Assembly (NCBI RefSeq): GCF_037042905.1 | Contig: NC_087254.1 | Coordinates: 8,680,001 to 8,744,000 of the forward strand | Length of the DNA: 64,000 nt | DNA from: Lytechinus pictus | Lineage: Eukaryota | Direction of reading: 5' to 3' | Shown here: positions 58,101 to 61,100 of the stretch, piece by piece | How the letters are laid out: every line of letters starts with the position of its first letter | Numbering within the stretch: position 1 is the stretch's first letter | The notes under the pieces: generated by a model | Seen by the model: only the letters and a program-made list of their open reading frames with translations | Told to the model about the DNA's origin: nothing | Databases searched by the model: none | Position numbers and translations under genes: made by a program

Positions 58101-61100
58101 GGCAGATGCAAGTATTTAAAATCGATTCATTTTTATGGTATGAGAAACAACTAGATGGTAACAAAAATACACCATTTAATAGCAGGGTCACTGGCACATG
58201 AAGACTGGGAGAGGGAGCAAGTATTGGTGGGAAAAAAGAAAAAGGAAAAAGAAGGGCAGAGAGGAGGAGAAAATAAAAAAAAGAGAGGTATGAATTCTAG
58301 AAAAACCCTATTGTCGAATTGAGGACAAAATTATACCTCTTTTAGGTCACCTGACTGCTCGCCCCTCTCCCCATTTTGGGGGTTGTAGCACGTCATTCAG
58401 GGCATAAAGAATTAAGTTTACTCTTAAAGGGGTGGTCCAGGCCAGCTCCAAAAAATATTTAGCCCGTAGTAAATAATTACAGGAGCCATTTCAAAAAGTA
58501 TTATCTCCTTACTCGACTTTGGAGATTTTTAAGAGCATTTCTTGTAACGGTTATTTGGGGCAAAAAGAATTAAATTTCGCGCACATGTAGCGAGATCGGT
58601 CACGTGACTGTGACGTACCATCTCCACTTTGGTTTAGCAACAATCCAGCGCGCGACGTCTCACAGCTGCAATATGCCTATGTGTCAGGCATACGGCTGCT
58701 CGGTTCGGCCGGGAGAAAATAACCATAAAAGTGCGTTTTCTATACCAAATCCGATCCGAGATCGAGAGAGATGTGCCCAGTGGCTTCACAATATTGGGAC
58801 TGACAAGTTTGACATAAAAATATACAAATATAACGCGAGTAGAGTCGTTTGCGAGGACCAAATGCTCTCTCTGGCCGTCGGCATCACCGGGCAGTTCCCG
58901 CACCGACACCAGTCATTTCTCCCCACTCGATCGGCCGCTGGCTGCGGTACGATCGGATCTTCCTCCACCTCTTCTTCTTCTATTCTTTGACGGTTCTCCA
59001 ACTCTTCCGCATTCCACCTTGGTTGGAATGCATATCCCGCAGGACCCGACATATTAATTGTTCAAATTATGAAATAAACGGCGAGAAACAAACAAATTGT
59101 GAATTACAGGGTCGACGGTGGCCGCAATCAATGCAAGTCGAAAACTACATGTAGCTAATTAATACCGTACGTATGCGGCGCTGATGATCTATACGCATAC
59201 GTACGTGCGAGCGATAAATATAGCTAGCTAGCTAGCTAGCTCGCTCGCGCTCGTAGCAGCAGCCAGCGAAGCCAAAGTGGAGATGCTACGTCACAGAAAA
59301 AGCTGCGCATTGCATTCTGGGATCGTACAGACTCGTGCCAGAATATGATTTTGGCAAAATTGAAAATTCAATAAAATATAACTGTGCCTCTTATTTCTTA
59401 AAAAAATATAGTATAGGAAAGAGAAGGTTTTTGTCTATCTAGTAGATATAAATTAAACCTGGCCTGGACCACCCCTTTAAAAGCAATTTTTTTAAGTTTT
59501 ACCTCCTGCATGGCTTGTGTAAACCTCTGATGATCAAGCGGACCATGATCTTGGCCATCGCCACCTCCGCCAGCATTGTTCATGTTCTGCGGTGCAGGTG
59601 AACCTTCTCTCGAGAGTGAATCGGGGGTAAACGTCCCACTGAACTGTGTGACATGGGTAGGTGATGATGGCGCAGAACGGCTGGAGGATCGAACAGGAAA
59701 CAGAGGAATGAACATTGAATTACATCACTATAAACTGCTTCATATTGACCTAATGTGTATGAACTACATGTATATCATCATATACCTGTATCATCTACGA
59801 GTGGGCATGCACTTACTCCTGATTAAATAAAAATACATCAACACTAATAATAATAATAAGTGTTCTTTTCGAGTTCAGTGATAAACCCAGAGAGTGGATT
59901 TGGGGCATCTCATCCCTATCAAACCTGCTGAACAATTTTTTCGGCTATGTGTAATTAAGAACGGCAGTGATGTCTCACCATGGAAGAATAATTTCAGAAC
60001 ATAAATTACATGTAAGCATTCAATATTAGTGTCTTGTATGAATTTATTTTAACGATGTTCTGATAAAATTGATATGCACTCCGTGTCAAAGTTCAATGAT
60101 GCAAAAGTTGACGATCAAGAAGGCAATTTCTTCAAATCAATGGAATAACAAAGAAGGGATAAAGATGTGATAGTTTCAGATGGTGTTTCGCTTTGTTCAC
60201 TAAATGCAGTGTGCGGCCTTCTATCAGCCAAATAAGGGACTTGAATACATGTATGATAGAACTGTTTCCACCGCTGAATTCTTTTGAGATATATTGCATC
60301 TTCCTTTTATGTCAGAAGCTTCAAAAGTAAAACCATAAAAACACAACATTGAAGAGCAATTCTTAGCAGTAGACCATCATGCCATGACATTTTTCCTCAA
60401 TATCATGGAAATAAATTGATAGCTCAAGGGGATTATTGATCTTTCCGCAAGTTCCATCAATTTCTTTCCTGTATGATGAAAGAAAAAACAGGTACACATA
60501 CCTTGATGAGACCCCACTAAAGGGTGTCCTGAAGCAAGGCACTCCCCTTTGTCTTCTTCTCCTGTAAGCTTGATCCATTAGCTTAGCCTCTGACCCGGGG
60601 TCAAGCCGCCAGAATGACCCTTTGCCAGGCTCTTCTTGCGATCGCGGAACCTTGATGAAGTACCGATTTAACGACAGGTTGTGCCGAATTGAGTTCTAAA
60701 AGACAGAAAAGAAACAAAAACAAAAAGTGCCCATATTGGTTTTATGTAAATGAACAGAAAGCAGGAGAGATTGTACTCAAGTTTGATGAAAAGCAATCTG
60801 TAAGTCATCACTAGAGATTTATTTAACGAATGGAAACACAAAATGATGAAGAACGCTTACTATTTTTAGATCAAACACTTGAAACATCTTCAATTGGTGT
60901 ACAAAAATGAAAAAAAATAAACATTCACATCCTAAGAGTTTTCTGATCAGATACATGTATGTGTGACACTAAAAACTGGATCAGACTATGTAGTCATTCT
61001 GGAAATCAACTCTCCCAAAACATTGATTCATACCTGCCATCCCTTGTCTGCTGTTCTGTAGTACGGATATGTCTTTGTGATATAGCTGTAAATTCCACTA

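Follow-up and report, generated by a model that had tools for sequence, protein, structure and literature searches.

A young, non-autonomous Kolobok family in Lytechinus pictus that probably arose by internal deletion of a two-gene transposon

Introduction

The Kolobok transposons were reportedly described by Kapitonov and Jurka in 2007, with Kolobok-1_XT as the type of the Kol0 lineage. In other well-known transposon systems, such as maize Ds, derived from Ac, and the KP and other deleted P elements of Drosophila, non-autonomous copies have kept the ends of the parent, have lost its interior at a short microhomology and are mobilized in trans. KP keeps the whole THAP DNA-binding domain and represses transposition. 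MITEs are shorter and contain no coding remnants.

Koloboks are recognized by TTAA duplications, RR/YY termini and a DDD/E transposase, and members of the Kol0 lineage encode a second protein, KolX (PMC9587614). This protein is homologous to the cytoplasmic ballast of P2X7 and to zebrafish Nanor (Kojima and Bao 2022, PMC9587614). Kolobok transposases carry THAP, DDE and H2CH motifs, and the T2 MITEs of Xenopus and other non-autonomous Koloboks have been amplified in trans at TTAA sites (PMC6004289). Echinoderms are absent from the hosts listed for Kol0 (PMC9587614). Here we describe a mini element in Lytechinus pictus that retains both ends and the first parts of both genes of such a transposon. 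Coordinates without a prefix are positions in the window, that is, the whole 64,000-nt stretch of DNA that was analysed.

Results

Positions 58424-59480 read TTAA, AGGGGTGGTCCAGGCCAG, 1,013 bases, the exact reverse complement of the AGGGGTGGTCCAGGCCAG 18-mer, and TTAA again. A Kolobok mini element of 1,049 bp, with perfect 18-bp inverted repeats at both ends and TTAA on either side, therefore occupies 58428-59476, the coordinates given by an initial annotation made from the sequence of the window alone. The left terminal inverted repeat (TIR) lies at 58428-58445 on the + strand and opens with 5'-AG; the right TIR, at 59459-59476 on the - strand, closes with CT-3'; and the two TTAA copies, taken as the target-site duplication, are at 58424-58427 and 59477-59480. 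The 18-mer occurs 104 times in the genome and its reversed control not once, which rules out chance. At the left end, TTAAAGGGG matches TTAAAGGRR, presumably the terminal motif of T2 elements. Further in is a 31-nt subterminal inverted repeat with 90% complementarity between its arms, the left at 58608-58638 (+ strand, ~181-211 nt from the end) and the right at 59266-59296 (- strand, ~185-215 nt from the end). An alignment between the left and right ends of the family consensus shows the 18-bp TIR and this 31-nt block as the sole conserved parts; the block is a candidate transposase-binding or promoter element. A (TAGC)n microsatellite at 59221-59248 is the source of much of the length variation among copies.

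Two convergent, truncated exons fill the middle of the element. On the + strand, an ORF at 58673-58990 corresponds to transposase exon 1. Its codons 1-62 (58673-58858), which read MPMCQAYGC...P...W...VCEDQ from the ATG at 58673, encode a THAP domain, after which the frame runs through out-of-frame antisense KolX sequence to a stop. This ORF matches the Pfam THAP profile with 28.9 bits (cut-off 23.9) over profile positions 1-55 of 87 only. The full THAP exon found in relatives on C21 scores 58.8 bits over positions 1-87 of 87 and has THAP1 as its PDB match. It continues as RVVCEDHFELDCFREDVRAKIMGYTPRKKMLKSDAIPTIF... up to a GT splice donor, with CEDHF...AIPTIF present. The window copy reads VCEDQ... 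in place of VCEDHF...AIPTIF and has thus lost both the AVPTIF box and the His that serves as fourth zinc ligand; DNA binding by the fragment is unlikely on this ground. A public 116-aa predicted protein shares 81% identity with THAP residues 1-68 and diverges right after CEDHFEE; it may come from a relative with a truncated Kolobok THAP exon of its own.

The - strand ORF, at 58786-59052, is the corresponding stump of KolX exon 1, with codons 1-64 (59052-58861) from the ATG at 59052, followed by antisense THAP sequence to a stop. It matches the Pfam P2RX7_C profile in register over positions 53-94 of 192 with 16.8 bits, below the cut-off of 23.5 because it is truncated, and it lacks most of the cysteines of the domain. 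The untruncated KolX exon at the C8 locus scores 27.9 bits, reads WCRCGNC...ESICC and onward ESICCREIG, and has as its sole PDB match residues 468-504 of P2X7, the part of the ballast that reads WCQCGNC...ELCCR. A 137-nt contig matches only 58887-59023 of the KolX fragment, both of its ends being unrelated, which suggests that this piece is also present elsewhere, whether in a transcript or in another rearranged copy.

The two stumps meet at a dinucleotide. The mini element is homologous to its THAP-side relatives as far as 58860 and to its KolX-side relatives from 58859 onward. Next to this CA the two relatives have different bases, which makes the overlap exactly 2 bp. The CA at 58859-58860 is the start of the His codon on one strand and the TG of the Cys codon on the other. 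The initial annotation had placed a 2-bp CA microhomology here, between a THAP finger cut after C-E-D, before the expected HF, and a P2X7-ballast-like ORF cut before the expected CC. It had called for both domains to be sought by profile and predicted that the parent would read on into CEDHF and ESICC. Both domains were matched, the breakpoints of the two sets of relatives coincide at this site, and both continuations exist in relatives of the same TIR family: the VCEDHF pattern at six genomic places (three on C21, two on C8 and one on C17) and the ESICC pattern at two, both on C8. All details given in the initial annotation were thus recovered at its coordinates.

Many other loci have the same junction. 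When the 812-Mb genome from which the window comes was searched at the DNA level, ~40 full-length matches were returned, and the junction sequence was found at 43 genomic places among ~50 elements (at least 43 copies). The junction is identical in all 32 aligned copies. Measured against the majority consensus of these 32, substitution distance averages 0.49%, and 0.96% between pairs; BLAST identities are only 96-98% because of gaps, largely in the (TAGC)n run. TTAA precedes the left TIR in 32/32 aligned copies and follows the right TIR in 31/32, so that 31 have it on both sides, and the DNA beyond is unrelated from copy to copy, as expected of independent insertions. A common junction and near-identity at unrelated TTAA sites together point to one deletion followed by recent amplification in trans. 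The reading of the initial annotation, a deletion derivative of a two-gene transposon, is thus supported, with the amendment that the deletion founds a family of ~50 copies rather than marking a single locus.

Public runs were searched for an empty site, and no contig spanned the flanks without the element; one DNA-like run assembled another copy instead. The TTAA duplication is accordingly deduced from the constancy of TTAA at both ends rather than seen directly. In a low-coverage DNA run that carries another organism label, a whole mini element (58422-59480) was present, with a different left flank, 8 mismatches, and indels in the microsatellite region; the family is thus not confined to the assembled individual.

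Substitutions among the copies at codon positions 1/2/3 number 2/11/9 for THAP and 6/6/9 for KolX, most of them altering the residue, and several copies carry frameshifts in the ORF stumps. This even spread over codon positions, together with the frameshifts, indicates that the stumps are not under selection. On this evidence, and with the zinc ligand, AVPTIF box and cysteines that they lack, the two ORF fragments are not functional proteins.

DNA from just past the breakpoint is kept at only six places in the genome, which represent three ancestral insertions. The C21 insertion exists as three copies with a common flank outside the left TIR, which shows that a single insertion was multiplied by segmental duplication. 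Their identity to the mini element's left half is 97-99%, and they carry no KolX. A nested ~450-bp repeat with a 9-bp duplication sits just upstream of the ATG, Kolobok homology ends ~170 nt past the splice donor of the THAP exon, and no right end was found within 21 kb. The C8 insertion exists as two copies, 5.5 Mb apart (C8:30745812-30783808 and C8:36317544-36362531, spanning ~38 and ~45 kb), which share a flank beyond the right TIR and form an inverted segmental duplicate of 93-97% identity. Each has a left TIR, a THAP exon with a 445-bp insert, a complete inward-facing KolX first exon and a right end. Identity to the mini element is 89% for the right half and 87-96% for the left. In the C8 copy that was read through, the interior is filled with non-LTR retrotransposon ORFs. 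The third insertion, on C17, is an old copy of 86% identity whose ORF contains stops. We considered whether the C8 and C21 copies were independent full-length copies and rejected this, given the right flank common to the C8 pair and the left flank common to the C21 trio.

Some details of the C8 locus deserve mention in their own right. The interior includes three tandem units of ~5 kb, each with a RecQ-helicase-like C-terminal piece, an L1-ORF1-like coiled coil, and endonuclease/reverse-transcriptase ORFs, and a 537-bp insert splits the right TIR of one of the two copies.

Intact Koloboks of other TIR families are present in the same genome. At C15:21004087-21019558 we found a 15.5-kb Kol0 Kolobok with TTAA flanks and the TIR AGGAAACCGAACCC. 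It encodes a THAP exon, a 674-aa transposase ORF that matches the Pfam Mutator-like family PF20700, and a convergent KolX exon. Its THAP exon shares 44% identity (E 3e-31) and its KolX exon 42% identity (E 2e-19) with those of the family studied here, at the same positions and in the same orientations. The transposase ORF is 100% identical at C15, C19:7718889 and C29:1011466. The C15 element itself sits in a copy of the same ~450-bp repeat that is nested in the C21 locus.

With the C15 transposase core as query, a genome search found ~10 other Kolobok loci (47-100% identity), each paired with a KolX match, and nothing at C8, C21, C17 or any solitary TIR of the family. Direct comparison with the C15 element (tblastn and tblastx) likewise revealed no transposase core in the 38.6-kb C8 locus or in 23 kb of C21, where only the two first exons match. 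When the protein library was searched by HMMER with the full THAP exon, the matches were limited to single-exon THAP fragments and THAP-C2H2 proteins and included no full-length transposase. None of these proteins matched the parent loci beyond the THAP exon, and a genome search with one of the THAP-C2H2 proteins found zinc-finger arrays only. By these sequence searches, the TIR family has no autonomous member in this assembly. Retrieval of a full-length parent by its TIR, which the initial annotation had suggested as a check, thus yielded no single intact parent. At the right ends of the intact families with the nearest TIRs, located at C16:10.8 Mb and C1:8.18 Mb, ~13 of the 18 TIR positions match, with a shared core TCCAGG, and cross-mobilization by a related intact family is possible.

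The element is located in an intron. A splice that links 57997 to 59501, seen in 22 stranded RNA reads and in contigs of two studies, places it within a 1,503-nt intron (57998-59500) of an expressed - strand gene, with GT at 59500-59499 and AG at 57999-57998. The 5' splice site (CAGGAG|GTAAAAC) is 17-20 nt away from the right TTAA, yet splicing removes the element cleanly in all runs examined. It makes up 70% of the intron; the adjoining exons encode low-complexity sequence rich in Ser, Gly, Ala and Pro. The stranded RNA reads also show a weak signal inside the element, on the + strand at ~58540-58960 and on the - strand at ~59127-58700, overlapping across the junction. Its depth, summed over ~50 copies, is at most 8, compared with at most 1 elsewhere in the intron. 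Both 5' regions thus still drive transcription, and their transcripts overlap. Expression can be stated for the family only, given the ~99% similarity between copies and a C21 THAP exon that likewise clears the 95% filter. One contig continues past 58860 into the THAP continuation of the C21 type.

Discussion

The window element is a well-preserved non-autonomous member of the kind of transposon described in 2007 and 2022. It resembles Kol0 elements in its TTAA sites, in its RR...YY termini (5'-AGGGG...CCCCT-3', the form given for Koloboks in PMC9587614) and in having an N-terminal THAP transposase gene that faces KolX, and differs from them in lacking the transposase core and most of KolX. 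A Kol0 element should also encode, or descend from one that encodes, a DDD/E transposase with the C/DxxH signature; the family studied here keeps no transposase core, and its exon 1 is 44% identical to that of the C15 gene, whose 674-aa body matches PF20700. The complete THAP domain is found in the full exon of the C21 relatives (58.8 bits), the window copy being cut at profile position 55, and the convergent KolX is found in the C8 exon (27.9 bits). The intact C15 Kolobok belongs to the same superfamily and has the same two-gene layout, with the TIR AGGAAACCGAACCC instead of AGGGGTGGTCCAGGCCAG; in their THAP and KolX exons, the full-length Koloboks of other TIR families in this genome share 40-48% identity with the studied family.

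Among non-autonomous elements, the family shares with the Xenopus T2 MITEs and other non-autonomous Koloboks its amplification in trans at TTAA sites (PMC6004289). It differs from the T2 MITEs in its length of 1,049 bp, its recognizable 5' pieces of both genes and its datable junction. We rejected the label of MITE in the strict sense (under ~800 bp, no coding remnant), and with 1,049 bp and two gene fragments classify the element as a deletion derivative. Like Ds and KP, it keeps its ends and has lost its interior at a microhomology; unlike KP, its THAP domain is cut before the last zinc ligand.

We consider it very probable that internal deletion in a two-gene Kolobok of the Kol0 lineage gave rise to this non-autonomous element. 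The ancestor would have been laid out as the C15 element is, with a left TIR, an intron-containing, inward-facing THAP-transposase gene, a KolX gene facing inward from the other side, and a right TIR. What lay between codon 62 of THAP and codon 64 of KolX is missing, and the stumps are joined at the common CA; the 18-bp TIRs, the subterminal blocks and the 5' regions of the two genes have all been kept. The join may have been made by interrupted gap repair, or by microhomology-mediated end joining after excision. A Kolobok transposase acting in trans would then have recognized both ends of the stump and inserted it, by cut-and-paste, at TTAA sites. Its source could have been an autonomous copy now missing from the assembly or a related family with a similar TIR. 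Deletion from a single parent is a reconstruction, since the left half is 97-99% identical to the one-ended C21 locus and the right half 89% identical to C8, and neither carries the transposase core.

These unequal identities could also be taken to indicate a chimera, in which halves from two elements or subfamilies were joined by recombination or by template switching during repair. Identity of the right half to C8, the one locus with KolX, is no more than 89%, the left half of C8 itself is 87-96% identical to that of the mini element, and no single young parent was found. Against this, C8 carries both halves in one element and in the same relative orientation, and the loss of young autonomous copies would explain the difference in identity equally well. 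We therefore regard a chimeric origin as unlikely, and both routes yield the same product and the same kind of element. Assignment to the other superfamily with TTAA duplications, piggyBac, has a negligible chance of being right. The TTAA at both ends would fit such an element, but the termini are 5'-AG...CT-3' and not CCC...GGG, the THAP domain that opens the left-hand gene is homologous to exon 1 of a transposase whose body matches the Mutator-like model, and no retained ORF holds a piggyBac domain. The KolX fragment, moreover, has an N-terminal cysteine motif that is absent from the piggyBac relatives (PMC9587614).

If the family is indeed a deletion derivative, one may ask whether it has been kept or tolerated for an action on its relatives, either as a source of sense-antisense silencing RNA or through the truncated THAP domain as a KP-like repressor. 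RNA from the two strands overlaps across the junction above the intron background of at most 1, and no autonomous copy is left in the family, as such an action might lead one to expect. However, the depth of at most 8 is a sum over ~50 copies, DNA binding is improbable for a THAP fragment that lacks its fourth zinc ligand (His) and the AVPTIF box, and the substitutions look neutral; we consider this explanation very improbable. A more specific version, which we would likewise call a long shot, is that two inward promoters 400 bp apart produced double-stranded RNA of the first exons of transposase and KolX, silencing these genes and helping to extinguish the autonomous members. Were it true, it would explain the absence of autonomous members from the assembly. 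Internal deletion followed by mobilization in trans remains our preferred account of the family.

The locus adds little new biology, as Kolobok, its TTAA sites, its THAP transposase and the KolX/P2X7-ballast gene have all been published. The proposal that the ballast domain travels as transposon cargo, put forward in the initial annotation, is borne out here and had already appeared in print in 2022 (PMC9587614). As a clean, textbook deletion derivative, the element allows its junction, its microhomology and the founding event to be read off directly. It also raises a small question, namely which transposase moved the copies of a family that has no autonomous member of its own. For genome annotation, the ~50 copies form a young family that should be masked as a non-autonomous Kolobok. 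If left unmasked, the two ORF stumps may be annotated as THAP and "P2X7-like" genes.

A separate observation concerns the C21 locus, which at 11.97 Mb (duplicates at 3.59 and 3.69 Mb) is a one-ended Kolobok with a left TIR, an intact THAP exon and a GT donor; its identity to the mini element is 99%. The strand that holds this exon also has, about 7.7 kb downstream, an uninterrupted 707-aa ORF encoding 21 C2H2 zinc fingers, and public data contain proteins that combine THAP and C2H2 domains. Going by this arrangement of sequences, the locus could represent the capture of a transposase exon into a THAP-zinc-finger gene that was then triplicated by segmental duplication.
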